This document shows, piece after piece, positions 1,598-30,637 of a stretch of DNA of 64,000 bases; position 1 is the first letter of the stretch; every line of letters starts with the position of its first letter. The notes beneath the pieces are model-generated. The model worked only from the letters and a program-made list of their open reading frames with translations. It had not been told where the DNA came from and did no database searches. Both the position numbers and the translations under genes were made by a program. The stretch lies in NCBI GenBank assembly GCA_023334545.1, contig JAADVB010000031.1:1-64000 (forward strand), in the 5' to 3' direction. This DNA comes from Salisapilia sapeloensis CBS 127946 (lineage: Eukaryota; Protista; Oomycota).

Positions 1598-4500
1598 ATG
1601 CAAGTGGCCGAGGTCCTGTCTGTGTGTCTTTGGAGCTTAGTAGAAACTTATAAGTAGACTAGATAGGAGAAAATGAGATACAAGAGTGTGACTTGGATAC
1701 GGACGAAGCGCTGACTTATCTCTCGCTCTTTGTCGAGAGAAACGAGGTCGGTGCCGCGTGCTTCAACGCACTCGATGCGTCGCTCAAGATGATGCAGAGC
1801 GGAGCAGCTGATGATAGAGACTTGCAAGATGTTGCCTTTCGTGTGTGAAAGTGATGAATCGTGTCTGAGATGTGCATGCGCAAGTAGGTAGTTGCGAGAC
1901 TGTATACGCAGATGGAAGCACATACTGTGCTGGTTTCGTCACGAAATGCAAACGCGGCCGGACTCTTGACGCTATTGAAGAGGCTGGATCGTGACCTTGA
2001 GCGTCAAACGGAAATCATCATGCGCAAGGTGGAACATGTTGATAGTGTACGTGTGACATTCTCTCACTTCAATATGATGCATGCAGCATTCAGGTGACTG
2101 CGTATCAGTGTCTTCTCTTTAGATGATATGAATGACAATTATATGAATACGCTATCGCCAGACTTTGGCTATGTAAAAGCTTGTAGAACCATAGAGCAAG
2201 TCCGAGTCGGATCTACAGACTCCGAGCAAGCCATGCCGACGAGCAACATACCGAGGTAGTATACTTAATTTAGTGTTATAGTCATAGTAATCGGACATTA
2301 AACGCATCGCACAGGAAAGATATGAATCGCTATATTACGAGCTACTTTGATTTTGATCGGCCTCAACTCATCCGAGCAACGGGCGGTATGACTTCTACTA
2401 CCTAGCAGCGAAGTTACATAGCTTATCACTTGCCTTTGAAACCAAATTCGATCTGCTGCTCCTACATTGGACAACACCAGCTCTGCTCAGCTTTGTCATG
2501 AAAGAAAAGGTATGGTCATCCTAGTATCTACCAACTACCCTGCTGTCATGAATTCAAATGTGTGTGATACGGCAGATTGGCAACCAACTCGAGGATGTGT
2601 CCCATCTCTACTTGTCCTCAGCCGAGAATATTACCCTTGAAGGCTCCATGTTCATTGACCCTGGGACGTACCAAGCACTCCAGATCTTCAACAAAGTTCG
2701 TTTCCTTTCCTTTTGACTACCATCGCAAGCAGGCCATACCGTACTATATAACGTGCACCTTTTTAATCTGTAGGAATGTCATCCATCACAAGTCAAAGTA
2801 CCTTTTCAAGCAGCATTGTACCATACAAACTGTTATTCAAGTTTATATCATAGGGCCATGGTCGAGGAAAAGAAGGATTGAGGTACATGATCATAATCTT
2901 TAGAAGCATATATCCCAACTCTAAAACATACACAGTCTCCTAGGTCTTTTGGATCAGACCATCACCAAGTCAGGAGCTGCGATGCTTCGAAGATGGATGC
3001 TGAGTCCACTTGTGGAAATCGAAGACATCGAAAGACGGTTATCTTTCGTACAGTTCTTCTACTCGCCACAAAATGACGAGATGCTATCTCTTTTCGTACG
3101 TATTCATCTAATAAATGCTGCATGATATGTTACTTTAGCTGAAAAACTTGCACATAGACCACTTGCCTCAAGCAATTCAAGAATGCAGCGGAAGGTTTCT
3201 TCCGCATCCAAAGAAGAAGCTACTCTGTTTACGACTGGTGCCACTTCCATGACGCTATCGCCGGATACGTCACTGCACAGTACAAACGCACGCTCTGCTC
3301 CACTTCCTTTCCATAGCCAACTTTTCTCTTGGTCCAGATCACAAATTGAAGACCTCTACGATGGTCGTCGATACCACGGTCCAGTCGACTCGATCCTTTT
3401 CCAAGAAATGCTGCAGAATCGAAGCATCATGCAGGTCGCAAACCTCCTGGATAACATGATCGACTTTGAACAAAGCCAGCAAGAAGGCAGTGTCGTCATC
3501 CGCGCAGGCGTCTCAGATGTGTTGGACCAAGCTCGCATGCGGTATCAAGACCTGAATCATGTAGCGGCATCACTATCTACTATCCAGACTACATGAATGC
3601 GTAACTAGACTGTCACGGTAGGTTCTAACAGAAGTGGCGTACCAAATCCAGGAAGCCAACCCTCGACTTCCATCACTTGTCGTTCAGTACATTCCGCAGA
3701 TAGGATACGTCCTCTCGTGCGACTCTCAAATCTCCATGTCCGGATTCGAATACCAATTCCAAGAAAACGAGTCCACATTCTACTACAAAGTATATCCTTC
3801 ATTCCAACCGGACCAGGGTAGATGGTAACGATATCATGCGCGATGTGTAGGAGGAATGTTGTCATGACTTGGACGAAAGCATTGGAGACATCTTTGGTAC
3901 TCGATCTCGTACCTCGGTATCGATACATGTACTTGCTCATCCTTTTTTGAACTACAGGATTCATCATGGACGCTCAACGCGGTTCGTACAATCTAACCAT
4001 CCATCATAACCTCACAAAGTCTCACTGGTTACATGCAATACGACAGAACTGCAAGAGGAGATTATCATGGCGATTCTAAAGCACGAGGAAGCCATTTACA
4101 GTAACCTCTTACGCTCTTCTTATCCTCACACAAACTCCAACTCCCACTTCACTATCCAAGGAATGATCAAACTCATGTCCAAAATGGACTGCTACATGGC
4201 TTTAGCAAAGTGCGCCAAGAACTACAACTTTACAAGGTTCCTCTTTCTACACCACTCTCTGCATATCCCCAATCCCATCTATCATCCATCTCTAGACCCA
4301 AATTAACTCCAGACAATGCTCTCCGCATCCAAAACGGACGCCATCCGCTACAAGAACTACTCGTAGATCAGTACATGGCCAACGACATCGTGCTAAGCGC
4401 CACTAGCACCGACTCGCTACTAAAGCTCGTCACGGGTCCGAACGGATCCGGCAAATCCGTCTACCTAAAGACCATCGGCGTGCTCCAATACCTCACTCAA

Positions 4501-5582
4501 ATCGGTAGCTTCGTCCCTGCTGAACATGGTACGACACCATCCACCACATCCTTATGCATCTACTCAACATGTCGATTGACGTGCTGGTCGTAGCTGAAGT
4601 GGGTGTAGTAAAAAAGATCTTTTCTCGCATCCAAAGCCTAGAAACGAGTACCATCAACCAAAGTTCCTTTACCATCGACTGCGGACAAGTCCTCAGACAA
4701 TCCACTGGCATTGTCATCTCCTTTATTCATCGTACTCTAGATCGCCTGGATGATCAACAACTGCACCGACAGAGCTCTCCTACTCATCGATGAGTTCGGC
4801 AAAGGTCTTACACCCATCAACCTTCATACCCATTACCCTCTTCCTTCCTAACTCGTACAAGGCACGGCTGAGCTAGACGGCATCGCATTGCTGGTACCAA
4901 GGAAGAAACCTAGTACCCTCCTTGCATTCCTCTTATATTCCTGTTATCAGAGTGCTACCATCAACTACTTGGCACGAAAGACACTCGAGCCTTCTGGTCC
5001 AAGAGTCATCATTACCACTCATCTACTAGTAGAATTCAAAACCCATCCATCTCCATACCTTTCAGTAGAATCCTCATAGAACTACTAGGAAGTACTCCGA
5101 TATCATCTACTTCAAGACCCACACACCTCTCTAGAACACAATCAAGAGGATTCATCTAGAAGCTTTCAAGACAAAGTCTGTCTGACGATGGAAACCCTCT
5201 GTACGTCGACAGAGGACTCTGCCATTAGTCAAACGACTCCACTCTACCAAATCAAAAGAGGAAACTCTATCCGAAGTCATGCTTTCGCCTGTGCACTTGG
5301 ATGTGGTACATTGACATGACTAGACAAACGCTTGGAAACATACCTTGATACATTTGCTCATCGTTTCCAGGGATCGCTAAGCATGTCATTGCGAGAGCGA
5401 AAGAACGAGAGAAGGCGTTGCTTCATGGAAGTAGCGTTCAACCACTAGCAGAGCTACGATCCAAAGGATCTCTTATTGAAGAACAAGTCGCAGACTTCTT
5501 CTCGTCCATACGTGACTGGTCGAATGCTTCAGATGAACAAGTAAACAGATTCATCACACTTGCGAGGATGACGGATCCTTAG
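1598..5582 (+). CDS. MSH5: MutS homolog 5 (meiotic MutS-gamma subunit), highly intron-rich
   Basis: Exons encode GRHPLQEL, Walker A LVTGPNGSGKSVYLK, QIGSFVPAE, SSFTID and LLIDEFGKG. The N-terminal EVGAACFN and absence of a mismatch-binding domain fit MSH5. Ends are approximate. Confidence 0.86.
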
Positions 5583-5701
5583 CCATAGTAGCTACCTAAG
5601 AGAACAAGTAACATCTTATCTACTTTTACTCGTTTTCATTTCTATATGAATCCGTTTCATCTTGAGCTACATCCTCAACACTACTTCCAGCATATACAAA
5701 G

Positions 5702-7891
5702 ATGACAGCAACGACATTGGAGCACTCAAATAGTACTCAAGGTATTAAACCTTCTCTAGAAGACACGACAATCGATGATGAGGACGATGAAGAAGAGAAT
5801 GAAGAGCCGGAGGAAATTGAGATCCGAATTGATCCATTAGCAGAAGCGGATGCGTCGATAGAAGACGCTGCATCTGGACTAAAGCTCATTCAAATGTGTC
5901 GAAGTGGAGACTTGTTGGCAGTTGAAGACCTAGTCAAGGCTGGGGCACCCGCAGGATTCATATCGAACAGCGACTGGACACCTGTTGCTGCCGCTGCCTT
6001 TGCTGGTCATCTTCCGATCGTCAACTTTCTCATGGAGATCGGTGCAGATAGCATGTACAAGAGTGCTGCAAGCCAGGATGAACTACAAGAGTCCACGAGC
6101 GACAAAAATGAGGAACATAGGCTCCACTTTACAAACAGCGGCATCAACACTCCTCTCCACTGGGCTTGCTACAAAGGTCATAGTAACATCGCTCTTGCAC
6201 TCTTGCATGCTGGATACAGCCCAGAGGATGTGGATCCAGTCGGCAATCGATGTCTTCATCTAGCAGTCTCGGGTGGTCACCTGAATATCGTCGAGCTCTT
6301 GCTTGCAAACTCCGTTGTAACGAATGAACGCAACAACTATGGAAACCTGCCTGTCGACCTGTCGACGGACCCTACGTGCACCAACATCCTGCTCAAGTTT
6401 GAGACCCAGACGCACTGTGAATGGTGTCTAGAGAGCTTCGGACCACTCAAACGTCCGAGTCTGTGTCAAAACTGCCGCAATATATTTTGTAATTCAACGC
6501 CATGCTCGATCACTGCTCAGGAGGCAACAACCAGTGGCTCTAGGTCATTCAGCTCACGTGGTGATGAAACGGGGAATACTCAACCTGTGGAAGGTAGGGT
6601 GAGGCGGTACTGTCAAGAATGTGCTGACGAAACAAACAAGGCAGAGCAAAACTTATCGTTCCAAGTTCATTCGAGACTCGCACTTATTCAGAACTCCATG
6701 GCAAAATTGCCATGGTACAGAGAAGAGGATGCGGTCCTACAAAAGACAATCATAGAGGCTCCATCGACCGCCACACTGCACGTTGAGGAGGAAAAGGTAG
6801 AGCCGTCTAACGAGATTACCACTGGAAGTGAAGAAGTAGAGGCTGATGCTACTACGAAAGATCAGTCGGATGAGCCGTCCAACGGTGGTGAAGAAGCAGA
6901 GCAACCACAAGCAGATGTCGACAACGACGGCGATGCTGCAAAGCCTACAGCAGTAGGTGATCAGGAGCAAAGTACAGTCGAAGAAATGGAACCAGGCGCT
7001 GACATCAAGACGAAGGACGATCCACATAACCAAGTGCTTTCCTCCGATCAAGTCCTAGAGGCCTTGACGCTGAAGCATGCGGATGCCGAGTCCTTGTTCA
7101 CTGCCATGGAAGCAGCTCAGAACAAAGCAGTTGGCCATTCAGTGGTCAATCAAGCAAAAGAAGTGTACCAACTACTCCTCTCACAGATAGCTCTAGAGGA
7201 AGAGATCAAGTCCTTGATGGCTGTTCGACCGATCGGCATTCGGTCGCAAGTAGCTCCGCTCATGAAAGCCCTCCGTCGCGCTAAGCAAGAGCGAGTGAAC
7301 CCAGCAACTCTCAAGCTCGCAGCTCAAGTAGTCAAGAGCGCAGAAGCAGAGTGCGCTCTCTTTGGTTCCTACGAGCAATGCGCCAAGATCGAAACCGGAT
7401 CAAAGCACCATCTCTCCACCCTCGACCGTTTGGACGCAGCTGTCAAGGTAGCTCTCAAGGCAGGCTGCACAGTTAGTCTCGCAGACAAGGCGACGGCGCT
7501 ACTGCACAAGCTAAAGGCTGAAGTGGCGCTTGAGGCGAGCTTACTCCCATTCACGGAAAGCTCATCCGGATCCTCGACCATTTACAGGTTCGAAGACGGC
7601 ACGGAAGCTCTGAGTCTGCTTGCAGCGTTGGAGACTCGAGCCGACAAGCTCACGTCTGCAATCGTACGCTTCCATCTATCTCTTCTGTAGACTCACCTAA
7701 CGGATATGGAAACCTAGGAAGCCGGTAGCCAGTTGGAAGGTGTATCGGCCGAGATGCTGGAGGAAGGTGCGAATATCCTCAAGCAGCTAAAGAAAGAGAT
7801 TCGGGAGGAGACGAAGAATGAGGAAGAGCGTCGACGACTGGAGGAGGAAGCGGCGTTGAAGGCTGCTCGGAAAGGCAAGAAGAAAAAGTAG
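5702..7891 (+). CDS. Ankyrin-repeat protein with FYVE-like Cys-rich zinc finger and acidic/coiled-coil C-terminus
   Basis: 662-aa ORF with ankyrin repeats (TPVAAAAFAGHLPIVNFL, TPLHWACYKGH, CLHLAVSGGHLNIVELLL) and CEWC...CQNC...CNSTPC...YCQEC. A final exon after an intron ends ...GKKKK*. Confidence 0.75.
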
Positions 7892-15088: not shown

Positions 15089-16048
15089 ATGAGCGAACCA
15101 GCGACTAAGAAGCAAAAGACGGACGAGACCCAGGCCGAAAACCTCACGGAGAATGCTGCTGTCCAGGGTGTCCTCGAGAATGTCCAGAAAATCGATGAGG
15201 AACTCGAGGCCGATAACATGCAGCTGAGCAAGGAAGTCCTGGCGCTCGAAGCTAAGCATAACTTTAATAAGCGTCCGTTGTTCGTGAAACGCCTAGAGCT
15301 CCTGCGGCAAGTCCCTGGCTTCTGGAAGCAGACAGTACGTCTAGGTCGTACTTATATCGTGTCAAGTCGTTTAATGCTGTGCTCGTAGCTTCTCAACCAT
15401 CCGCTGATCGTCCACTTTATCGATGAGCAGGATGAGGAGATCATGGCGTACTTGAAAGAGGTCGACGTCACCTTTACGGACGATCGTGGTGGCTTCAAGA
15501 TCGATTTGGTACGACCGATATGTGTGTTTAGATCAATATGAAACTCATCTCGTGATAGACTATGGAGAAGAATCCTTTCCTGACGAACGAAAAGCTCTGG
15601 AAGGAGATTACATACGCAGAGGATGGTGAGCTAGAGGTCGAGGTGTCTCCTATTGAATGGACGGAAGAAGGCAAGAAGCTCCAGGACAAGGACGCCGAGT
15701 CGCCTTCCTTTTTCAACGTACGTCCTGCTACTGCCTTGTCACTCTCTCTCTTACACACACATGTCTCCATCTAGTGGTTCGCTTCGGAAGAAGGCGACCA
15801 GATCGCGTCGGAGGTCTTCAAGGACGACATCTGGAAGGACCCCGTGCAGTTCTACCTGAACAAGGCAGTACGTATGATCTCTTGTGCATGTAAAACCTAC
15901 CTAACGCTTGTCGCGACAGTTGGAGGATGTCGATACGGATGACGAAGAGGAAGACGACGAGGAAGAAGAGAATGAAGAAGCCGATGGGGAGAAAGACACT
16001 GAGGAGGAAGCAGGTGGAGAGAAAGAGAATGGGGAGGAAGACGAGTAG
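15089..16048 (+). CDS. Nucleosome assembly protein (NAP/SET family histone chaperone)
   Basis: KRPLFVKRLELLRQVPGFWKQT, LNHPLI, EKNPFLTNEKLWKEI, SFFN and an acidic DE-rich tail. Confidence 0.85.
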
Positions 16049-16120
16049 GAAAGGTGTAGATTTTGGAGATTGGTTCGTTTAGACCGTACGAATGCAAAGC
16101 GATGTCACCCACTTCTTCCC

Positions 16121-16408
16121 TCACGTAGCTTTGCTCTTGTACTTGGCACTTCGTAGCCACTTGATCTCGTTCTTATTGAACATGCCCCAGTCCGGAAGTA
16201 CCACCTAGATCACACATTACTCCACGCGTTCCACCTTCGAGCTATTCATACGTACGATCGCAGCGAGGCACGTGGCAGCTCCCCAGCCTTGAACAGCAAG
16301 CTTAAAGTCCTGCTGGAGGTACCCATAGATCCAAGCAGGCACGCATCCGATGATCAGACACGCCACGAGACACCGTTCGACGACGAGCTGGCCGCGATAG
16401 TCCACCAT
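16121..16408 (-). CDS. SPCS1: Signal peptidase complex subunit 1 (SPC12 family)
   Basis: MVDYRGQLVVE...AWIYGYLQQDF...(intron)VVLPDWGMFNKNEIKW matches the SPC12 DYxGQ and PxWPxxxxxxxxW pattern. Confidence 0.85.
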
Positions 16409-16505
16409 GATCCAACGCTCGAGTCCTTGTTAATTCGTATCAAGTGCTTACGTTTGATTCGACAGGACGTGAGACAAATCAAATTGAGCTCTTCCAATAG
16501 CAAGC

Positions 16506-16940
16506 ATGGGGATACATGGAGAACCAGCGGAGGGCATGGAGTGCCTTGCCACCATGGACGACATTACGAAAGAAAACTACTGCGAGTACCAAACAGCGCC
16601 GAGTGGTAAGTGGCACCCGTCGCTCTTTGCAGCTGAAGTCGTGACGCAGCTGCAGCAGACGCAGTTCCACTCGTACATGAAGGCTGTGCAGCAGCCTGAT
16701 TGCAAGGCCGAACTTCGGCGCTTGGTGGCCAAAGGACCGCCGGTCTGGGTCGAGGACAAACACGCCTTGTCGCTGCCCGAAGGCGACACGCACGTGTGTC
16801 AGCTCTGGTTCGCGAATGAGGACAAGGAGGTGAGTGCCAAGCTCGACGGTGCGGTCGAAGGAGAGGAACGAGAGGCGTTGTGGGCAGAGCTGCGTGAGAT
16901 GCTAGACGCCATGGAAGAGGACAAGGAAGAAGTACGATAA
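16506..16940 (+). CDS. Conserved-looking hypothetical protein, 144 aa, intronless
   Basis: Clean ORF with genic codon usage and globular-looking sequence (HGEPAEGMECLATMDDIT...GPPVWVEDKHAL). No function recognised. Confidence 0.65.
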   Translation: MGIHGEPAEGMECLATMDDITKENYCEYQTAPSGKWHPSLFAAEVVTQLQQTQFHSYMKAVQQPDCKAELRRLVAKGPPVWVEDKHALSLPEGDTHVCQLWFANEDKEVSAKLDGAVEGEEREALWAELREMLDAMEEDKEEVR

Positions 16941-17101
16941 GGTGGTAGAATGAAAGCTAGAAGAACTCGTACGTTCCGTTCGCATGTGTGTTGGTTGTTA
17001 GCTCTAGTAGACTGCTACGATACGCTCTTTGTCTTCTATCAAACGATAGAAGAGTACCTCTCCCTCTTCGTATCCAACCGTGTAAGATCACACGTGGCAA
17101 A

Positions 17102-18397
17102 ATGAACGCCAAGCCGATCATCGTCGAGATCGGCTCTCAGTTCCTCCGCGCTGGACTCGCCGGAGAGCGAGGACCACGCTGCGTACAGCCATGGGAGGTG
17201 ATCTCTACATACAGAACTTCATAGCGCACAGCTCTAACAAGATACAGATCTATGAGCTCCTACAAATGCCGAGGACGAAGGAAGAATGGGTCGAAGAACT
17301 ACAGCAGCCACTGTACGACGTATGCTTCGAGTACGTCCTCTAGCTCTAGAATAGTCGGAACTTATCTTCATGGCGAGTGGTAATTATATAGATCGCTGCT
17401 CGTGAATCCACACCAGCGCCGGGTCGTCGTGTGCGAAGGCGACATGGTCTTCCCACACGCACTTCGAGAAGCCATCGTCACGGTATTCCTGCGCGATCTA
17501 AAGGCTGCGAGTGTAGCCTTCGCCCCTGGGATGCTTATGGCGATCTACGGGACGTCCAACCAGACGGCGCTGATCATCGACTGCGGATACAAAGAGACTC
17601 GACTCTTTCCCATCTTTCAAGGCATCCCCCTCCGACACTTGTACACTGTTGTTCCGACAGGCAGTCTTCGGTCCTCTCTGATGCTCCAGAAGAGTCTCCA
17701 GGTCGACTTGTCCAATGCCAGAGACATTCTCGAGCGAGCGTGCTTCGTCCAGCCCATGGTACGTCCATTTCGATACTTTTCCTCGTCCACACTCTCAATC
17801 GTAGCGTAGGAGCCTGTGCAAGACGTCTCAGACGCAACGATTCGTCTGAGTCAGGAGCATACCATTCACGTAAGTAGTGTCTGTAGATGGATGTAAGCAC
17901 GATCTCATCATGGAAAACCATAGGTACCTGCCGCACTTCGGTCCCAAGTTACCGAGCATCTCTTCGTCGGTACCTTTCACTTGCGCTTGCCTCCTCCACT
18001 TGCCTTGTCTAACGCTATAATATCGTGCTTAGGAAACGATCAAGACGGTGCTTCTATCGTGGAAGCAGTGGCAGACCTGGCAGAGCGCCTGCCAGTCGAT
18101 GCTCGGCTCGGATGTCTTTCCAATCTCCTCCTCCTGGGTGGTACAGCCATGCTCCCTGGGTTCTCTCTACGCCTGGTGGAACAAGTACGCTCCAGTCTGC
18201 AGCAGAAGAACGTCTCGAAGAAACTAACGGAGGAAGGCTCCGTCGCTGCTGTCGCCACCCACTTCCCACCGAATATACTCGGATGGGTCGGCACATCCGT
18301 CTACGCCAGTGCTGCAGACTTACAGCCTCAGAGCATCACGATGGAGCAGCACACATCTGGCACGTTCGCTCTCCCAGATTGGCTCTCCGTCGCCTGA
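17102..18397 (+). CDS. Actin-related protein, most like dynactin ARP10/Arp11 (ACTR10)
   Basis: PIIVEIGSQFLRAGLAGE (phosphate-1 loop), TALIIDCGYKETRLFPIF, NLLLLGGTAMLPGF and LGWVGTSVYAS are divergent actin-fold motifs. Confidence 0.75.
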
Positions 18398-18473
18398 TAA
18401 ATCCAATGCAAACATGTAGAGTTCGTTCTCAAGTAGTCAACCCATGTTATACCTTTCCATATCTACTCTTCCT

Positions 18474-20332
18474 CTACTTGCTGCTACGTAGTCCAAGCGG
18501 TCGACCGGTGCTGTCCCACGGAGCCTTCACGCCCAAGTCAGGGATCTTCTGCAGTGTAACCGCGGTGTTCGATGAGCCCAATGGCGCAATGTGGTGCGGG
18601 AAACGCTTGTTCGTTCCACCCACAGCTAACTTGGAGTCCAGCTGACCTGTCACGCGCTTCACGTCCGCATCTTCACTGCGCTTCTCATTCGCCTTCGCAT
18701 CCGCCTGGAGGTTGTCACTAACCGCAGCCGGGGTCTTGCTTGAAGACACTGGAAGCACAGAAGTGGCCGGTTGCTCTTCCGAATCACTGTCATCGCTACC
18801 GAAGGGCTCGTCCAGCACTCGCCACAGACTAAGTCGACGTAGTTCCTCGCATCCACCGACACCCTGTGCATACGTCTGCAACTGCACTCCCTCTTTCGGA
18901 TAAGACACGTCTGGGAAACTCGTGTCGAGAAGAGGCTGTTCCTCATCGTTCTGCTCGATGTAGACGTAAAAGGTCGAGTCAAAGTAGATTGCCACGAGCA
19001 CGACCTCTCCGAGGTACGACTTGCTCGCGATCGCCTCCACGTCCTTCAGCTGCTCGCTGGGTGCGACGCCAGCCTCGAAGAAACAGTCGATACCTTCTCC
19101 TTCGAGCCACCAACTAGCTCGCTTGCCACTTTCTCCATTCTTGGCTAGCTCTCGGACAATCTGCTCCGCTCTAGATAGCTCACCTTGTAGCGCTGGCATG
19201 GCTTGAGCCAAGTATGACATGGATGGCGTAAAGAGCGACGTTGCGGGCATCTTGGTTGCTTCGCACATGAACGTCTACGAGGTTTCCATAAGTTTCTACA
19301 TATATCGAACCGATAAATAATGTTAAATACCAAGGCGCTTTGTTGCCGACGAAGGAGAGGGATGATGACTGGAACGTCACCAAGCTCCAGCTTTGGACCG
19401 AGATCGACGTGACCATTGTAGCACCAATTACCAAATCGAAATAGCACTTCTCTAAGACTGCCAGTTCCTCCGTCAGTTCTCGGTGTGCGTCGGATGACAA
19501 AAGTTTGATTATATCCTTGCCCACTCACATCTTTACACTCGAGTTTGAGTGTCTTTGGAGGGCTCCGGACAGCGAGTTCACTTCTTTCACCAGCTTGCCA
19601 TATCATTAGCTTTTTCATGTTGGTGCAATCGTCGTCTTTATACGTCTGCAGATGAACTCCTTGTAAGTGAGCGGTGAGGTCCGGAAAGCGTACATCGAGT
19701 AGGGGCTGCTCTCCTTCTCCTTCCTGCAGCACGATATAAAAGCTTCTCTGGTAGTAGATGATGAGCAAAACAAGCCCACGAACAAAGGTTTTGCTCGCAA
19801 CGAGGTCGACGTCGTCAAAGCACTCATAACCTCCACTTACGAGCTCAAAGAAGTGCTTGTTGCTCGAATCCTCTTCGATCCAACTGTTATCGTCCTGGAT
19901 GGCACGCTGGAGCTTCTTTTCAATACGTTCGCTTGCGAGCTCAGACCCGATAAAGTCGAAAGCGTCGTATAGCGTTTCGAGAGGCACACTGTATGGCGAT
20001 GTGGACGGAAGAGCCCGCCATTCGCACAGATACTGGAGAGAGCCTTGCTGCTTCTGCAACGCAGGGATGACCATCGGCAGGTCTGCTAGCTCGAGGGCTG
20101 GACTTCCCAGGTCGACTTTACCCGCATAGCACCAGTTGCCACATCGGAAGAGGACTTCATGGATGTTGGATTTACTCGACCGAATGATGTAGGATTGGTT
20201 GTAACCGTGTCGAAGAGCAACGACATTTGGCGAAGGAGCACCTGCAGTGTCCACTTCACAGTCCGAATCGCTCTTATCGTCCGTGTGCTTAGAGGTAGGA
20301 CGGGAGTCGTCGCTGCTGGATTTGGCTTCCAT
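18474..20332 (-). CDS. Hypothetical protein built from two tandem copies of a ~190-aa domain
   Basis: Two ORFs join across a ~57-nt intron near 19280-19337. The repeats share GYNQ..I.R, EVLFR.GNWCY.G.VDLG, IASK, EQPLLD..FPD and GV.LQTY. Confidence 0.72.
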
Positions 20333-20508
20333 CGTACCTCGACGCTTTCGCTGTAAATAATCTCTCGCGTAGTGTGAAACCTACGGACGGGTGCATGGGA
20401 GTGGAAGTTTGAAACCGATACGAGAGATGAAAAATAGTGTATTCCCATTCGAGCTGTCTTTTATCTACTCTTATGACACCAATCTTCTCTCTTGTTGTTG
20501 CCGTCAAG

Positions 20509-22079
20509 CTATTCCTCTCCGACAACTGAGGCAAAGGTACGGCCGCCACCCCACGCACCACCACTTTCCTCTTCATCATCACAACGGTCTTCCGACGGCG
20601 TAGGTGGAGGGCCCCAAGCACCACCACTCGTTTCCTCATGCTCGTGGGGATCACCCGAAGACGGAAGCGGAGGACCCCACGCACTGAGCGGTGGAGGTGG
20701 GGGCGGTGACTCTCCACGGCTCAGTCGACTGCGCGTGCGACTTCCACGGAAGCGAGATTGGATCCGAGTGGCTGCCTGTCGCTCGTCCGGCGGCAGTGCT
20801 TCCGGGAAGGCCGATCCGATCTTGATATTATCGCCACGGCCGAAGGGGTAGCACTTGATGTTGCAGCGGTAGGGTCCGCAGTCAACATGGTTCTCCTCCT
20901 TCCCGTTCAAAAAGCACAACGTGTAGAGTGCAAGTTCAAACTCCGGACTGACACCGATGAAGCTACTCGGTTCTAGATGAGACAAGAGGCAAGACAGAAA
21001 CGCTACTGGACATACCTGGTCGACACAGGCTTGATCTCGTCCTCCCACTTGAACTGGAAGGTCAGGAGCTGCTCATAGCTGTCCGGTTCCATGAATTTGC
21101 GTCCACGCTAGTCGCATCGTAACCGAATGAACAGAATCTTTTTGGACAACTAGCTTACCTTCTTCGGGTGGACGTAGCCTCGGTAGTTGACCCGACCTTC
21201 GCGCTCTTCGTTGTAGATCTGGATCCAGTTGTGACAGCCAGAGACTTTTCCCTGCACACATACGCTTCTCAGAAGTACGTAAGATAAGGATAGTCCAGGT
21301 TTCCACACGTACGTCTCTTTCTTCACCGACGAAGACATGCTCAAAGCCGGACGAGTCGTTCCGGACTTCTCGACGGTAGAATCCAAACCTAGTTAACGAA
21401 AAGATAAGCACTAATTCAATAATGAAATGGGAAGTGAGGATGGTACCAGATATCGTCTAGCTTTTTGACAAAGTCTCGCATGTCCCCATCAAACTTCTTC
21501 TTCTTCACAAGCCACCTAGAACCAAAGCGTAAGCATGTACACCTGCGGAGTAAATGTCAGTGCCCAATACTTGTGGACGTAGCGAATGGGAAGTGTCTCT
21601 GAGACGGCGTGGAGGAAGTTCCGGTTCTCCGACAGCTCCTCCTCCGTCACGGTCTCTCTCGTCCCAGTCTACTTGGCCGTCAATACAGGCCGCGGATGGC
21701 GTCGTAACAATCGTATCAACGTACGCTACGCGAGTAATTGTCCAGCAGCATTCGGAAGCACTGGAACGTCGGTCTCTCCAACAGACTCTGGTCGACGAAC
21801 GTAAACAGAGGCTCGTCCGCGACGTCCCCGTGCTCCCACATGTGCTTTCCCTCCTGCAAATTCAGCTCATAGTCGATCCCAGGCTCCAGTCTAGTGTATA
21901 TCAGACGCATGAGATCGCTGCCATCGCCACCAATCTATAAAGTAGACCTGTTCGCGTCTAGAAGCCAGAGCTTAGTGCAAGCCTTGGACAGGTCGTGCAG
22001 CTCCTCGACTACACCAGTGTAAGCAGGACGACAAAGAACCAAAGCTAGTCGACGTACACGTAGGATCTTCTGGTGCCAT
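20509..22079 (-). CDS. ENDOU: EndoU/XendoU uridylate-specific endoribonuclease with C-terminal IQ motif and Pro-rich tail
   Basis: LWLLDANR, SSGFEHVFVGE, GCHNWIQIYNEEREGRVNYRGY and GVSPEFELALYTLCFL, followed by AATRIQSRFRGSRTR and PPPPPP. Confidence 0.87.
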
Positions 22080-22129
22080 TTTGATCTGAAGCTCAGGTCC
22101 AAAGTGTTTGGACAATCAGATCCAAAATG
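22077..22129. repeat. Imperfect palindrome joining the EndoU and ArgA start codons
   Basis: Outer arms CATTTTGATCTGA / TCAGATCCAAAATG (13 bp, 1-nt bulge). Inner arms GTCCAAA / TTTGGAC around a GTG loop. Confidence 0.8.
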
Positions 22130-23733
22130 CTCCGACTGCAGAGGTGGGTGCGACGCGTGCGACCAACTCCAGCTTTGAAGACACTTCGATGCGCTGCTTT
22201 CAATTCTTCAGCAAGCAATAGACCGACGCAAGCCACTGTGACGGACACGCTGCCAGAGGTGCCTGTGAAGTGCCTCGAGCTGGTGCAGCGCAGAGAGCCA
22301 TCGGCCGACGCCAGGAGCTCCGTTGGGACCTTTATCAACATGTTCCGAGACATGTCGCCATACATCACCTTCCATCGAGGCAGCACCATGGTCATCCACA
22401 TTCCTGGCGAGCTCTTCGACTCGGACCTCTTCGGTGCCACCATGCAGGACCTGACCCTGCTTCAGACTTTCGGCATCCGATTGGTCCTCGTGGCCGGGTG
22501 TAGGCCACAGCTCAATCGGCAACTGGAGCTACGAGGGCTATCGCAGCGCTTTGATGGCGGCCTCCGGATCACTGGACCCGAAGAACTCAAGGCAGCCATG
22601 GATGCCGCAGGGACGGTGCGATTCCAAATCGAGAGCTGCCTCGGCCGTGGACTGATCAATTCGCCCAGCCGCCAGCGACCCGTCAGCGTCTCGTCTGGAA
22701 ACTTCATCACTGCCCAGCCGATCGGTGTTCGGTCCGGTGTCGACTTCAAGAACACGGGCGAGATGCGTCGAGTGAACGTCGAAAAGGTGCAGGACGCGCT
22801 TGACAATCAGGACATCGTCCTGATATCTAACATCGGCTACAGTGCCAGCGGAGAAGTCTTCAATTGCATGTCCGAGAGCGTTGCAAGCAAAGCGGCGAGT
22901 CAGCTGCAAGCAGACAAGCTCATCTTCCTCCACAACGGAGAAGAGATGATCGACAATCGGTCTGGTCAGGTGGTGCAGGCGCTAACTATTCAGCAGGCGC
23001 AAGAGTACGCTGAGATAGCTCGGAACGATCCCAAGATCGACTCCAACTTCCTTACCTACCTCAAGCAGTCGCTCAAGGCCTGTGTGAACGGAGTGACGAG
23101 AGCACACCTCGTCAGCAGCCATGTGGACGGAGCGCTCTTGCAGGAGCTCTTCACTCGAGACGGCGAAGGGCTCATGGTCTCTAAGAATATCTACGAAGGC
23201 ATCCGCATGGCCACGAGAAGCGACATCCCGAGCATCATGCGACTCATCCAGCCGCTCCTGGACAAGGACGTACTAGTGTCTCGCTCCCAGGAACAGATCG
23301 AGTCGGATGTCCATACGTTTGCTGTCGTCGAGAGAGACGGAGCTCTCATCGCTTGTGCTGCACTACAGCCGTACGAGAACAAGCATGCTGAAATGGCTTG
23401 TGTAGCTGTCGACCCTGCCTACCGAAGTCTAGGAAAGGTACGTGTATGAATTTTGAAAGAACCGGCCAAGAGCTCATATTAGTGTAGGGTAATGCGCTGC
23501 TGGGATTTATACTGCGAAAGGCTCGAGCGGTTGGAGTGACAAAGGTCTTTGTCATGACGACGAGGACGTCTCACTGGTTCCTCGAGCGCGGCTTTCAAGA
23601 GGCGACGGTGGACGACCTTCCTGTGTCGAAGCAGAACAAGATCGACCGCAAACGCCAGTCCAAGGTGTATATTATGGACATTAGCTCCAAACGCCTTCTA
23701 GACGAAAAAGAGTTGCTGCTCAATATGGTTTAA
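22127..23733 (+). CDS. argA: ArgA-type N-acetylglutamate synthase (amino-acid-kinase domain + GNAT), N-terminal organellar targeting-like peptide
   Basis: FRDMSPYITFHRGSTMVI, LVLVAGCRPQL, SGNFITAQPIGVRSGVDFKNTGEMR, GYSASGEVFN, LLQELFTRDG, EMACVAVDPAYR and HWFLERGF. Confidence 0.92.
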
Positions 23734-24399
23734 TGTAGCTAGACATAGACGTACATTGGACTTTCATCTGTTGGTCAACTTTCTCTGTAGCTGCTTACGG
23801 CAGATTACCAAGCAAACAAACTTAATCTGACGATACATGTTTTCCAATCTTGAAATACTTTAAAGTCACAGCCAGCTGTAGGCCAGCAATTAGAACGCAG
23901 GAAACATCGTGTTAGCCTACTTGGACGAAAGTAGACTAGGAAATATATTGTTAATGCTTTTGGACTTAGGACGTAGTGGTGACAACAAGCATCGCGAGTA
24001 TTCATGATGAACTCAGAGCAACCTTACCAGCAATACGAGTCCTTTAAGTAGTCGTTACAAAATTTAAAACATGGCAGATTCTTGCCAAAGCAATAGACTC
24101 TTAGGGCCATCAAACTAATGATCTAGCTAAGCAAATACACGATGCCCAAGAAATCACAACCAAATTACAGAACGAGAAAGCAAACACAAGCAGTGTAGAA
24201 ACCCATCAGTATGTAAACTGTAACAATGACTAAAATACATTAAGGATCAGCGCATTGCGTGCATATAGTATTGTTCGTTCATTAGAATAGACTCATGTCT
24301 ATAATATTTTGGTACATTTCGACTGTAGTCGTGTTTGACACTCCCACATCACAAATTCGACTGAGATAGATTCTGTCCCAAATAAAGCAACTATCTAGC

Positions 24400-27300
24400 G
24401 TGTCTTTTTTGCAAATAACAAAAGCACCCTTAGGCGCAAATAACTGTATATATCTCAACTTGAATACGTTCTAAGCCGCATTGATCCGTCTTGTAAAAAT
24501 GTAGCTAAACAAAATTTGAATTGGCACGCATATTGCTTGGCTTCTAACAACATACACTCGAAGACAACTATGGTAACCGTCTCAGTTGCTAATATAGTAA
24601 CAATCGCAAATTTATTATCAACACATCAATTGCAGCAGATTTATGTTTGTAAAGACAGCTAAATAATCACATAATCTCTAAATTATCAATAAAATAAATG
24701 CCAGGTTACAAAATATTTCAACTAAAATACAAGACTATATATGCAGTAAGTAGCAACAAGGTAAAACCGTTTAATAAACAAATGCTGTATCTAGTAAATG
24801 TCGTTTTACAACAGATATTCGTTATTTACAAACTTTTTTATTAATTAATTTGAGTTATAAAATACAAAACGATAGTTAGTGCTAAAATGAGGTTAATTGA
24901 CGTAAATGTTTTGTGTACTTCTTTTAGTTTAATATTATACCAAAAGAAATTTTTCTTTGCAATAATATAAAACTAAGAACATAAAAAGCTTATCGTTTGC
25001 AGTATATACAAAAGTAAATATGTCAGCTTAGTTATTTTGAAAACGTACATGACAACATACAATGCTTGCTAACTCATATATTAAAAGGTCGTATATGTTA
25101 AATATATTCTAACAATTAAATTAATGACTTTATATGTTGTTAGCTTTTGTACTAAAAATTATTTTTACTCAGCTAGTTGTATTACCTAAATTTAAAACAA
25201 ATACACTGTAAAACAGTTTTAAGCAAAAGATTAACAAAATAATCACAACCAAAATCTTTACATTGCCTTGAAAAACTGTGAATGATGCATCAATACTAAA
25301 TCAATGTATGTTGTCATTCAATTCAAACATAAAAAAGACCTTTTAAGTAAAAAAGATACGAAGCGTTCACGTAGTAACAAATTGCCGAAGACCAAGCAAA
25401 CCTTAACATCAGTTTTACCTAAACATATAGAAGGCCAGTTTTAACATTGCTTACAAGAATATATACAAAAAGTGTGGAATTCCAGCAATGCTAATCAACC
25501 TTACAATTCTAAAATGCGGCAACATTATTCTACTTATATAAAAATAAAAGTTAGAATTTATAACAAATCAATCCGTAAATTTTAATGCTTTAAACAACCA
25601 GCAAATCGTAGTATACAAAGCATTATAAAACTTTTGCTAGTTTGTGCAATCGTCTTAAAGTTTTACAAACTACTTTAAAATAAAAATAGAGAAAATATAA
25701 TTAAATTTGTACATTACATAATAAGCATTGTTAAAAAAGAAAGTAAATAGATTTAACAATAACTGTATTATAGACAATAACATCTTCAATGTTTTCAAAC
25801 AAGCTGTATTCTTAATCAATAAACTTTTTGCAGACCTTGATACAACAATTGATAGGCACTGTTTAAGCTTTAAAGTTGTTTTGTCGTTTTGTGTAAGCAA
25901 AAATAATTACAAAATTTTATTTTTTATTCTAAATAAATGCAAACGGTTTTGTTAACATGTTAATATTATTAGTGTTAAAAGTAATGCATATATTTAATAT
26001 CAGGAGCTTTTATTTTTGTAGACATAGTCTTGTTATAAATTAGTTGCTATTTTTGTTGTATAAGTTTTGCTTTAAAGCATGATCAAAAATGTATAAACCT
26101 TTAACGTAAATGAATCATTAATGCTTAATGCACAAATCTATTCGGTTTAATCGTATTAAGCTCTATAAATGACCTGCTTGCAAGCTGTCATTTTAAATTG
26201 GTGATAAAATTTTAGTTACAGACATATGCCCAATCAATAACGATATTTTGAATTACAGTATGTTTTTGTTAAAATGTATCGTAGTTTAGTTTATTATTAG
26301 AAGATGTTTGCAAATTTTGTCTAATAGCTTTATATGGTTAATTACAATGTTTCGTTTTTTGTCAAAGTTTACCTGTGCATTTAGCTTTTGTAAGTTTAAT
26401 TAAAAAGTAGGTAAAACAATATTTAACGTTGTAAAAAACATACATATTTTTAGTTTTTATAAATGCACTTCTAAATTTTTGTATTATATCAGCTCGTTAT
26501 TTTATTTAAACCAGATATAAAAAAGATTTAATATACAAAGCTAAATTTTTTGTATTCTTGTGAAAACTTTACAGAACAATATACTAGTACCTTGTTAACA
26601 ACGTTAGTTTTTTTTGTGTGATTTGTTTAAGAAAACATTGTACTGTAGAAAAAAAACTTTTTAAATAATAGTGAGTTTCTAATACTTCTTAAATGTTTTA
26701 CTTTATGTTGATAAAACATAATGATTAGACTAAAACAGATCAAATAATATATTAGTTTTAAACTATCTATGATGTATTTATGTTAGCTTATTTTTAAGAT
26801 TAAGGAATCTTTACTTGCTTTTAAAATTACAAATATTATTTAATTGTACAATATCTATCGTTACAATTTATTATTTCATTTGTTTAGAGTGTTGCTGTTA
26901 AGCGTAAAAATACAGATTTAGTTTATTGACGTATTGTATGGTTGTTTTGTATGTGTCAAATTGTATTCACTATATAAACTTTAGCAAATTGCTCGTAGCA
27001 TGTGCACAGTATGCGCTGTATGCTGAGTTTGTGTAATGAATTTTATATTGTATGTGTTGAAAAAGAAAAATAGAAAAGCTATATTATATTCTTGTATACA
27101 TACCATAAATATTAATATAAGTTTGCAGCTAAAAATATTTGAGTTCGCTAATTTCAATTTTTATCAACATATTAGATTTTTGCTATAAAATTTTTTTATG
27201 AGAATAGAGTTTTACTTAATGTTTTTTATCTATAAACAGATTTAGTTGTTGACAAAATAAACAATTGATTTAAGCATTTGTTTTTAGAGCCAATTATAAG

Positions 27301-27480
27301 CGTTGATCTCGCTGCCATTTTCAACAGCCTTTAGAAAAGAATATAATACACTTTTACAAAGATATGTTAGCAATTTAGATACGATAGTCTTGTGACAGAA
27401 ATCTAGGACGTACAGCATGTATTATGTTTTTATATTTTTGTCAAATAGTGGTTATTTGTGTAGCGTTTGGTGTCATATTA
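24400..27480. other. Extremely AT-rich, ORF-free core of a gene-free island (~22% GC in samples)
   Basis: Hand-counted 300-nt samples gave 23% and 21% GC, against roughly 50% in flanking genes. Stops occur in all frames and the dinucleotide bias is strong (see findings). Boundaries are gradual. Confidence 0.9.
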
Positions 27481-28237
27481 CATCATTTAATAAGATGTAC
27501 TGGGTGGTGAAGTATGGCTGAGCTGTTAGCGCGAACTTTTATACAATCAGTGTAGGGATCAGAAGCCGGTCTGTACGTGACTCCATGTCAAAGTCAGTAC
27601 TACTGCAACACCAGCATCACAGAGCTAGATATGTCTTGCCATTGAACGAATTTTGCGATTTTATATTGCCTTCTCAAGCCAGCATTCTAGAAATTAGAGA
27701 CGGATGACAAGCGTCCTCTTGTTACATCTTGCTTCGCGAGCACAGCCTGATCTGATCAATGACGTAGAGTTCATATAGTCCACTTTTTTATGTTGGTAAA
27801 ATTGATCGTTATGCAGTTGTCGTACAAATGAAAGACATGAATGAATAATTTTGTTGTAGAACTTGCTGCTCAAGTCTGGATCATTAAGCCTGTATGAGTC
27901 AGGTATTACCGCTATACTCTAATTCATGACACTATCAAGATACTGTCATCTCCTGTAAAGTGCCTCTCGAGATGTACTCCTACTACTTGCAAGTCTACAT
28001 CATGTAGCTGCAATGCTTTTACGTCCATGCAGTCTGGGCTCAGCATGCACGATCTTCAGAGTCGACCGTTTTAAACAAGGTTTGCTGCATAGCTGCTTTA
28101 CCTAGGTGCCTAGATCTAGTGAATGTTGATATTAGGTGGGAACTATCTGCAGAAAGCAGATAGCCCCGGCGCACAGGAGAGAGAGCGTATTTGGGGGTAG
28201 ACATAAATGAGTCAGGTATGGTCAATGGTCCATACCT

Positions 28238-28884
28238 CTACCAATGTCTGATGTCATCCGGAAGTATGTTCTGGACTGCCTCAAGTTCCGGCCGTAGCTC
28301 TGTATAAGCCATTTTGTCGTAAGCACGCAGGTGGTATGTCCAGGAGAGCACCAATACGTGTGCCGCAAGCGATCTGTATTTGTGAAACGATTGTTTCAGA
28401 CGTGAAGCCTTTGGGTCCACTCCGCGCTGAAGTTGCCATAGGATGACGGCATTGTCTCCTACGGCATGAAGGCGACTTAAATGTAGAGATTTTGCCCCTT
28501 GAAGTCCAGTCAGCAAGCTCCAGTATTCAGCTTTGTTATTCGTCGTCCGACGATTTGCGAGAAAGGTACTACCTATCAAAGGAACTCCCCGCTCCAGAGT
28601 CAACGTTTCGCGAGCTCGACCATTCTGTACCAAGTACAGTCTAATGCTTTAAGCTTGGCACTGTATCTTCTAGGATGCTGTTGTAGTCGTTTTAACCAAC
28701 AATTATACTTTAGCGTAATTATCATTATCATCCAGCCGTAATTGGCATAGTAGAATATATTAAAAGTTATATATATGTGATGGAGAGCCGCAGCATTAGT
28801 GTATGGCAGTAAAGATGTTAACATTCTAACGGCGATCTGCGGAAGTAGACATCGCAGCACTCTTTCTAGTCCATGAGAACACAT
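28238..28884 (-). mobile_element. Degenerate retroelement relic with archaeal-type RNase H domain (probably the C-terminus of an L1-like non-LTR element; Ty3/gypsy not excluded)
   Basis: TTNNKAEYWSLLTGL...LHAVGDNAVIL...SWTYHLRAYDKMAY matches the RNase HI NNxAEY / GDS / HxxRxxNxxAD layout. An upstream frame reads LHHIYITFNIF...RLQQHP, resembling an L1 ORF2 C-terminus. It is frameshifted. Confidence 0.72.
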
Positions 28885-30016
28885 ATCAATGCTTCATTTG
28901 ACCTTAAAAGTACAAAGCAAACAACATGACCAATTCACTCAGTTCTGTAGGTAGCCACTGTTCCTTAAATTCACCGCAGGAAGCAAAATCGAAGTTATGA
29001 CGTTGAGGTTTTCTGCTAGCAGACGCAGTCTTGTGTTATACGGAAGTTTTCTGCTTGCTCGCATGTCGCAAAATCTAGCGAATGGCAGCCTAGTGCGTGG
29101 TCGCGTTTAGTTTAGTTTATTAGAGAATCAATTCGCGGTACTGCTAATGTGTCCATTGCGCAGTAGTTGTCGTGCTTGTATAGGGCTTATTGAAGCTTAC
29201 AAGTTTTTCTCGTACACCAAGGATCGGTGTCGGTGACAAGGAGAATAAATTTCAACACTGCTCAGCGACGTAGCTTACAAAGTTGTCGATAAACGGCTGC
29301 TACGACATGTTCAGATCTATCTCTTCTATCTTTAGACTCAACACTTTCACTTACCTGCTACATGACCTGCACGATTAAATCTGCTACAGGAACTCTGGAC
29401 TATTCTGCTAGAACAACGGCAGCCACCTTAGAGTGCAATCTACACCAAGTACCTTTCGCCTGTTGTGACGTATGATGCGCCTATGAAGGTGCTGGATAAT
29501 AGAGATTGCTACTTAGTCTCAAGACGTAACGCAGTTTGACATCTCTATTTCACTACTCCATCTTATGTAGACTTGCATGAACCATCAAGATCTACCCGAT
29601 AACAGATAATATATGTGTGCTTCGCTGCTGTAAATCACTGCCTAACAAAGTAAATTCGTAGTAGCTGTGAACGGAGAGTTGCTTTCTGCATCTCTACGTT
29701 TGCTTCAATAGTGCACTTGTTTGATGCGTCCCTAATGGCTAAACCAATCCACCACATACCAATTCAACTGAATCTAATTACATAATCAGACGAGTACTTG
29801 TAAAGGCACCCGAGAAGCTCATGCGGAAAAACGAGATAAAAGGTAGTAAAATGGCCATTTATTCAGAAAGACTCGATGTACGCTGCCTAGTAGTCGTATG
29901 TACGTCACATCATCCCTTCCGAACTTCGACAAGGTCATCTATTCTTTCAATAGGAAGAGGAAACTTCGGTACGAACTCTGAAAAAGTTTACTTTTGATTC
30001 TAGAACTTTGGCTAGT

Positions 30017-30022
30017 GATTGG
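30017..30022. promoter_or_regulatory. Candidate CCAAT box (GATTGG) upstream of the DNL-zinc-finger gene
   Basis: GATTGG lies ~55 bp before the ATG at 30078. Confidence 0.4.
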
Positions 30023-30077
30023 GTGAAAATGGTCGGATGGTAGTATAAAGAATTGACACTTAACTAGGAAGCAAACG

Positions 30078-30637
30078 ATGGCGAGTACTTATCGAGGCGT
30101 TGCGCGTGCACTGGCGCGAGTGGTGCAGACAAAGGCACCCAAGCGGACGCTCGTTCAGCTGCAATCTCAAGCTTTTGCTCCGACGTTCCAGAAGCCGATT
30201 ACATGGCGTAGTTTGAGTACGTCACCTCCGACAGTCGGCAGTGGCGATGCATCGGACCCGACAAAAGGCTTCGAGGACGTCCCAGGGACGAAACTCGCGG
30301 GTGACAAGTTCACCATGGTCTACACGTGCAACGGTAGTCTCCTTTCGTGTCTACTCCCTTGTAGTGCGTGCTGACGTTGGCGATAGTGTGCGAGACGAGG
30401 GCAGCCAAGACGATCAGTAAGAACGCGTATGACAACGGGGTGGTGCTAGTGCGATGTCCTGGCTGTGAGAACCTACACCTGGTCGCCGACCGCCTCGGCT
30501 GGTTCGATGACGACTCGACGGACGTGGAGAGCATTTTGAGCGACAAGGGCGAGCAGGTGCGCGTCGTGACAGGGGACAACGTGCTGGAGCTGACGGACAA
30601 GGACCTACTAGGCGACAAAGCTCCGAAAGACGAATAG
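30078..30637 (+). CDS. DNLZ: Mitochondrial DNL-type zinc-finger Hsp70 escort protein (Zim17/Tim15/HEP1)
   Basis: FTMVYTC-(intron)-VCETRAAKTISKNAYDNGVVLVRCPGCENLHLVADRLGWF, with an Arg/Ala-rich presequence. Confidence 0.9.

Follow-up and report, generated by a model that had tools for sequence, protein, structure and literature searches.

A class of 3-kb AT-rich islands with a central strand-skew switch and a deficit of C after pyrimidine in an oomycete genome: candidate small regional centromeres

What keeps a gene-free island of 25.9% GC in a region that averages 51% GC, and what has shaped the order of its bases? The question is raised by a stretch of 64,000 nucleotides from Salisapilia sapeloensis CBS 127946 (GenBank assembly GCA_023334545.1, contig JAADVB010000031.1, positions 1 to 64,000 of the forward strand; the whole stretch is called the window here), in which a single-copy AT-rich island occupies positions 24399-27556 (3158 bp). 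An earlier note on this DNA had drawn attention to a shortage of C preceded by a pyrimidine (YC; Y = C or T) and proposed that a once GC-normal repeat had been hypermutated C-to-T at YC by a genome defence akin to fungal repeat-induced point mutation (RIP) or to APOBEC deamination. Our analysis favours a different setting for a similar process. With a probability of roughly 0.55, we consider the island to be one of a class of small regional centromeres of the kind found in diatoms, Plasmodium and Cyanidioschyzon, each acting also as a fixed replication origin and made AT-rich by local YC-to-YT mutation.

The island and the class to which it belongs

The bounds of the island were set by a GC content below 33% in 300-nt windows, a threshold that no other region of the window passes; along the 64 kb, GC drops to 24-34% only at ~24.0-28.0 kb. 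When both strands are counted, 562 of the 815 C in the island follow a purine (0.690; binomial p 9e-28). In 107 3-kb windows outside the island in the same 64 kb the fraction is 0.494 +/- 0.016, which places the island at z = 12.5. The strand-symmetrised observed/expected ratios of the dinucleotides over the whole island are:

GA/TC: 0.63
CC/GG: 0.58
GC: 1.91
AC/GT: 1.19
CA/TG: 1.23
CG: 0.93

The low values for GA/TC and CC/GG are not what base composition predicts, and the strand-symmetric YC depletion is thus real. The hand counts on which it had been proposed were reproduced exactly: in the two 300-nt samples C follows a purine in 29/39 and 21/29 cases (together 50/68) and G precedes a pyrimidine in 24/30 and 24/33 (48/63), and the genic control gives 17/37. 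The accompanying statements that CpA is plentiful (19/39 in sample 1) and that CpG is near expectation (3 + 3 = 6 in the samples) hold for the whole island as well, as the ratios for CA/TG and CG show. The pattern is therefore of neither the RIP type, since CpA is enriched, nor the CpG-decay type; decay of 5-methylcytosine is excluded by the lack of CpG depletion. Among the trinucleotides the 5' neighbour is dominant, with GCA/TGC at 1.88, ACA/TGT at 1.58 and GCT/AGC at 1.54, and with TCC at 0.40 and CCC at 0.41.

Two controls show that the bias does not come with low GC content in this genome. A mitochondrial contig of 23.5% GC has a C-after-purine fraction of 0.505 and a CC/GG ratio of 1.46, and 500-nt windows of the same genome at 35-45% GC, old transposon relics included, give 0.52-0.53 for C after purine and 1.06-1.13 for GA/TC. 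As CC/GG is already low genome-wide (0.77), the parts specific to the island are the deficit of TC/GA and the excess of GC and AC/GT. The context bias is confined to the islands and is not a by-product of AT-richness.

Within the island, direct and inverted repeats are at chance level only, and neither a 10-bp AA/TT periodicity nor a tRNA or Rfam family was found. Ten open reading frames (ORFs) of the island (44-76 aa) were scanned for Pfam domains without a match better than E 0.04. A public assembly contig of the source sample spans the island at depth 63, equal to that of the flanks, so that a collapsed repeat and an organellar insert are both excluded. No RNA contigs lie on 24000-28700, whereas the adjacent gene has spliced RNA contigs with depths of 71-342; rare RNA may, however, be missed by contigs.

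The island is not alone. Three spaced patterns of W (A or T) were searched genome-wide in the 22.4-Mb assembly of 1365 contigs (plain W-run patterns were not specific for islands) and matched 24 contigs, 15 of which were checked by sequence; each of the 15 proved to be an island or its allele. Corrected for such alleles and for islands cut by contig ends, the count comes to an estimated ~15-21 distinct loci, or ~1 per 1.1-1.5 Mb, with which a rough capture-recapture estimate is consistent. On any one contig the matches are confined to ~3 kb and two islands never share a contig, an observation of low power because the contigs measure at most ~140 kb. The nine complete islands are uniform in size and composition, with lengths of 2884-3339 bp and 24.5-26.8% GC. 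When partial islands are included (thirteen sequences in all), the fraction of C after purine ranges over 0.62-0.69, the GA/TC ratio over 0.63-0.77 and the GC ratio over 1.2-1.9.

What the islands do not share is sequence. No 12-mer or longer word is common to three of them, and island-versus-island comparison revealed no similarity, even after transition-blind alignment, in which the sequences are recoded as purines and pyrimidines, aligned locally and scored against shuffles; here the scores were at the null level. BLAST of the island against its own 22.4-Mb genome returned the island itself only. The recoded alignment against 124 kb of own DNA gave a best score of 34, with shuffles at 30-35. 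This C/T-tolerant search, which the earlier note had suggested as a check, thus yielded no parent copy in the 124 kb or among the other islands, and the idea of a once GC-normal repeat finds no support in a single-copy island.

Two small AT-rich contigs (C1228 and C1253) each end in an inverted copy of their own first 146-153 bases (98.7-99.3% identity), which is probably an assembly artefact at islands that are hard to assemble.

A central strand-skew switch and context-dependent change between alleles

In addition to the symmetric context bias, the island carries a strand asymmetry that reverses near its middle, where the cumulative skew reaches its maximum (~25848). The two arms are:

24399..25848, no strand assigned: left arm; top strand with A>T (+0.10) and C>G (GC skew -0.09)
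25849..27556, no strand assigned: right arm; top strand with T>A (-0.10) and G>C (+0.17)

Both arms thus have T and G in excess on the strand that points outward. The sign change of the GC skew in mid-island, from C>G (left) to G>C (right), recurs in 9/9 complete islands. For the AT skew, T>A holds on the right in 9/9 and A>T on the left in 8/9, so that the full switch is present in 8/9. When the islands were pooled in a 12-bin profile, both skews reversed sign between bins 5 and 6, at mid-length; the pooled outward strand contains 40.5% T, 33.9% A, 13.9% G and 11.7% C (n = 28377). The YC deficit is alike on both strands (0.646 and 0.643), which means that the context rule is symmetric and the amount of change is not. 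The polarity of the skews would be the footprint of a replication origin that has been used constantly over evolutionary time.

The assembly offers a way to observe change at these sites. Two small contigs proved to be diverged versions of islands that lie on larger contigs. The simplest view is that they represent the second haplotype, and it seems that the haplotypes were separated by the assembler only within islands. The two pairs are:

C159/C631, positions 691-2142 of the larger sequence: 1450 aligned bases, 48 differences (3.3%)
C1213/C1322, positions 4377-6931 of the larger sequence: 2551 aligned bases, 132 differences (5.2%) and a 169-bp indel

Considering only sites with unchanged neighbours, there are 72 C/T, 49 A/T, 30 A:C or G:T and 1 C/G differences. 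The rate of C/T differences per unchanged C is 0.164 where a pyrimidine precedes and 0.047 where a purine does (odds ratio 3.5, Fisher p 6e-7); the same test per unchanged T gives a ratio of only 1.6 (p 0.07). The 5' neighbour acts in a general manner, T and C both being disfavoured and A and G both favoured, and the 3' neighbour has no effect on C/T differences. Taken separately, the two pairs give odds ratios of 2.4 and 4.6, and the value is 4.0 when five identical bases are demanded on each side. Because the odds ratio is partly tied to composition, a context-free null was also tested. If, as at equilibrium, half of the differences are taken as C-to-T, 31.1 of the 72 are expected after a pyrimidine, and 46 are observed (p 5e-4). 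Only the unrealistic case in which all changes are T-to-C gave a non-significant result (p 0.08).

The YC deficit is thus matched by a higher turnover of YC, as a mutation bias predicts, and the data support a real local C/T mutation bias at YC. The direction is presumably YC-to-YT, and the comparison was made within islands, so that no higher overall mutation rate of the islands is implied. Of the proposed hypermutation, the C-to-T component at YC is supported, with YC apparently ~3.5x more prone to change in allelic copies of two sister islands, and its setting in genome defence is not. C/T changes are only part of the picture: over all differences, transitions do not dominate (83 vs 97), and A/T transversions make up about one third. 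Fifteen changes are tandem, and a plain ultraviolet (UV) signature is unsupported, as just 1 of these 15 tandem pairs is CC/TT.

What the islands may be

The traits of the islands recall two kinds of small centromere. They are a few kb long, have a GC content far below that of the genome, are unique and motif-free, and are gene-free and, as judged from the island of the window, poorly transcribed. The centromeres of the diatom Phaeodactylum tricornutum are low in GC, unique and motif-free and belong to a 2-4 kb class shared with Plasmodium and Cyanidioschyzon (10.1101/096016). The likeness to these centromeres, including those of Plasmodium falciparum and Cyanidioschyzon merolae, lies in a size of a few kb, a GC content far below the genome average and a unique sequence devoid of repeats and conserved motifs; they would further share a frequency of about one per chromosome-sized unit, and P. 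tricornutum is, like the host of the islands, a stramenopile. They differ in that CENP-A binding and episome maintenance have been demonstrated in the diatom and are predictions for the islands, and in the central skew switch and the YC deficit, neither of which was found in the consulted sections of the diatom study.

The skew switch has its counterpart in yeasts. Koren et al. (2010) described one switch of GC and AT skew per chromosome, located at the small regional centromere, in Candida albicans, C. dubliniensis and Yarrowia, and read it as the mark of a constitutive early origin (PMC2924309). Like the islands, these centromere-origins are small and unique, with G>C and T>A on the strand that leaves the central switch; in the islands, too, both skews switch at one central point and the outward strand is G- and T-rich. 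The differences are that the skewed regions of C. albicans are GC-rich and the islands AT-rich, that the yeasts are fungi, and that no YC component is described there (PMC2924309). From the first likeness we infer centromere identity, and from the second, origin activity.

If this is correct, an origin at the middle of each island would have fired constantly for a long time, as at the centromeres of Candida and Yarrowia, and the composition would be the near-equilibrium product of a local mutation regime. In this regime C-to-T change would be ~3.5x faster at C after a pyrimidine on both strands, and the strand pointing 5'-3' outward from the centre would change somewhat more often; it would serve as the lagging-strand template, which is single-stranded longest. 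Frequent A/T transversions would be part of the same regime. As to its cause, exposed single-stranded DNA may be deaminated chemically or by some enzyme, or repair may be poor in special chromatin.

Several points weigh against the centromere-origin reading. Every oomycete centromere on record spans 100-350 kb or more, contains many Copia-like elements and has an average GC content (PMC7082073, PMC11139960, PMC9584435). In particular, those of Phytophthora sojae, P. infestans, Globisporangium, Pythium and Peronospora measure 115 to >270 kb, are enriched in the Copia-like transposon CoLT and have the GC content of the genome average (PMC7082073, PMC9584435), and those of P. infestans reach megabases (PMC9584435). 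The island shares with them its lineage, poor transcription and a position at a site of synteny change (PMC11139960); it differs in being 3 kb long, unique and of 25.9% GC, in the lack of a Copia domain in the sampled flank ORFs, and in that ordinary genes abut at least two islands. Furthermore, with an assembly in 1365 contigs, one island per chromosome is no more than a prediction, and the figure of 15-21 is only an estimate. Divergent transcription from the centre would yield the same skew, though no transcripts were seen. Finally, the differences between alleles have no assigned direction and were observed at two other islands, and a similar pattern of polymorphism could arise from weak selection or biased gene conversion that disfavours YC.

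It is possible, though we do not think it probable, that the islands are fixed efficient origins or special chromatin such as nuclear-envelope or scaffold attachment sites, and that the centromeres lie elsewhere, perhaps in transposon-rich DNA. The central switch is a footprint of the origin type (PMC2924309), and the known oomycete centromeres are quite unlike the islands (PMC7082073). However, ~15-21 sites in 22 Mb are far too few for a eukaryotic set of origins and come close to the 12-18 chromosomes of oomycetes (PMC11139960). The islands resemble small regional centromeres in their uniform length, extreme AT content, unique sequence and silence, and no Copia relic was found in the long flank ORFs sampled at eight other islands. 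More doubtful is the proposal that the YC deficit is maintained by selection or biased gene conversion acting on DNA mechanics or on protein-binding words such as GCA/TGC, rather than by the rate of mutation. The trinucleotides enriched most strongly (GCA/TGC, ACA/TGT and GCT/AGC) would suit such a cause, and disfavoured YC alleles would be young and hence more polymorphic, which is how the allelic result would be mimicked. Yet the islands have no motifs or longer words in common and no 10-bp periodicity, the effect on polymorphism is a general one of the 5' neighbour with little influence of the 3' neighbour, and selection would have to be very efficient to act on hundreds of single dinucleotides in 3 kb.

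The defence hypothesis of the earlier note, according to which a RIP-like or APOBEC-like system hypermutated a repeat or transposon of once normal GC content, now appears very unlikely. A YC-specific C/T bias is real, a retroelement relic adjoins the island, as had been reported, and a dispersed repeat occurs near two other islands. Against this, the island is single-copy, has no transition-blind similarity to anything sampled and retains no relic of a protein domain in its ORFs, and the signature is missing from the adjacent transposon relics and from old dispersed repeats (35-45% GC). A class of ~15-21 uniform 3-kb elements, with a central switch of the GC skew in 9/9, is not expected of decayed repeats and speaks for a chromosomal function. 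RIP, too, turns C into T on both strands and leaves AT-rich DNA free of ORFs, but it acts only on duplications, lowers CpA and requires a C5 methyltransferase of the RID type, whereas the island is single-copy and enriched in CpA, and no PF00145 gene was found. AID/APOBEC3 deamination resembles the process inferred here in that C/T change is favoured after a 5' pyrimidine on both strands, and more so on the would-be lagging-strand template. It differs in that its targets are foreign or retroelement DNA and not a fixed chromosomal element, and in that a cytosine deaminase leaves unexplained the A/T transversions among the allelic differences. Least credible of all is an origin from foreign or organellar AT-rich DNA, be it mitochondrial, viral or bacterial. 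The GC content of 26% is near the 23.5% of the mitochondrial contig, but the island lacks ORFs with Pfam matches, tRNAs and Rfam matches, and ~15-21 islands of equal size exist. A nuclear mitochondrial insert (NUMT) in particular is ruled out by dinucleotide composition, which differs from the mitochondrial values given above, and by a depth equal to that of the nuclear flanks.

The genome was searched for enzymes that could drive C-to-T change, as the earlier note had also advised. Matches to PF00145 (C5 cytosine methyltransferases of the RID/Masc1 type) numbered zero, with control genomes positive, although the assembly may be incomplete. The AID/APOBEC-family profiles PF08210 (APOBEC_N) and PF18778 also gave none, with weak or no positive controls, as did the NAD1 and OTT_1508 deaminases, searched without a positive control; for these families the absence is weak. 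For PF00383 there were RibD-like matches, two tRNA adenosine deaminase-like ones (TadA/MafB19 family) and one domain of the cytidine deaminase (CDA) type in a 1272-aa protein. These CDA-fold matches look mostly like housekeeping genes; the long protein, the sole one found outside that category, is:

C247:41166-44984, + strand: open frame for a 1272-aa protein with CDA, SAM, EF-hand and Tudor regions

Its deaminase domain seems to be intact, with the zinc-binding and catalytic motifs CAER and PCGDCRQ; the closest solved structures are homotetrameric CDAs, and a protein-atlas comparison named the domain no more specifically than 'CDA-like'. An EF-hand domain and a C-terminal Tudor domain are present, and the SAM-like segment was seen in the sequence and in the Pfam list of an orthologue. 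A word search yielded only one full-length orthologue with the same layout (P0121, from a Logan run, 29% identity) and one partial match to the Tudor region. The fusion of a nucleoside-type deaminase to a chromatin-reader domain is unusual. The protein is a lead only, and nothing ties the deaminase to the islands. We accordingly regard as quite improbable the version of the centromere reading in which AT-richness is actively made by a 5'-pyrimidine-preferring deaminase that is targeted to chromatin or origins and acts on exposed single-stranded DNA, with this lineage-restricted protein as one candidate. If it were true, the sequence of the centromeres would be written by the cell itself, through local mutagenesis.

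Should the islands be centromeres, two designs would exist among oomycetes, the long transposon-rich one of Phytophthora and, in the compact genome studied here, a 3-kb one resembling that of diatoms, which would bear on the relation between centromere type and genome size within one lineage. The islands would also be a clean case for studying why centromeres are so often AT-rich: ~15-21 independent, unique replicates of equal size combine a context footprint with a strand asymmetry suggestive of replication, and diverged alleles allow the process to be measured. In addition, a 3-kb centromere and origin could underlie stable episomes in oomycetes, as it does in diatoms.

Neighbouring genes and synteny

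The features around the island in the window are:

22127..23836, + strand: N-acetylglutamate synthase (ArgA) gene, left neighbour, 3' end towards the island
23436-23485, + strand: ArgA intron near the 3' end, 50 nt, GT..AG, supported by spliced RNA contigs from three runs
27557..30400, no strand assigned: right flank of 2.8 kb, 43-45% GC, in which no ordinary gene was recognised, without YC bias
28238..28633, - strand: RNase H-like retroelement relic (Pfam RVT_3), ~700 bp from the island edge

The spliced RNA contigs of ArgA are identical to the assembly over ~790 nt and terminate at 23821-23836. ArgA has 70-72% amino-acid identity with its Nothophytophthora, Pythium and Phytophthora counterparts and 60% with the Saprolegnia protein; by its sequence, the host is a peronosporalean oomycete. 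On the right side, assembly contigs break at a short repeat (28088-28131). The RVT_3 relic (compared over 28310-28504; contig C601) has 41% aa identity to another relic (about 6985-7179 of its sequence) ~450 bp from the right edge of the C1122 island, and both relics thus lie less than 1 kb from the right edge of their islands. At other islands ordinary genes reach the border: a gene for an LRR-IQ protein ends at the edge of the C590 island, and one for a short-chain dehydrogenase lies at the edge of the C1167 island.

The gene order around ArgA was compared with that of relatives. In Pythium oligandrum the order EndoU-ArgA-EGF is kept, with 87 bp between ArgA and the EGF (EGF/teneurin-like) gene, and in P. 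infestans the ArgA-EGF adjacency is kept. A relative from Logan has EndoU upstream of ArgA and an unannotated gene of 667 aa in the EGF position. None of these three has an AT island at the ArgA locus. In the genome studied here EndoU-ArgA is kept and is followed by the island and by different genes (zinc-finger, TFIIB-ribbon and SF3b10); the ArgA-EGF adjacency is broken exactly at the island, and an orthologue of the EGF gene was not found in this genome. Karyotype changes in oomycetes are reported to centre on centromeres (PMC11139960), and the break of synteny is consistent with a centromere, but not decisive.

Some further observations concern repeats and the assembly. A dispersed repeat of ~500 bp has at least 40 copies genome-wide with 67-79% identity; one copy lies 350-850 bp left of the C863 island (2478-3031 of that sequence), others are near the C1289 and C358 islands, and a further one is at C601:87264-87611, outside the window. 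The nuclear assembly set includes a mitochondrial fragment, contig C952 (5291 bp; nad11, nad1, nad4L), and pattern matches suggest that there is little other mitochondrial DNA in the assembly. In P. oligandrum, a stretch of 6 kb in which no gene is called lies 3.5 kb past ArgA (15287-21728 of its sequence); ~3 kb of it have 42-45% GC, and it ends in a chromodomain ORF that is probably part of a retrotransposon.

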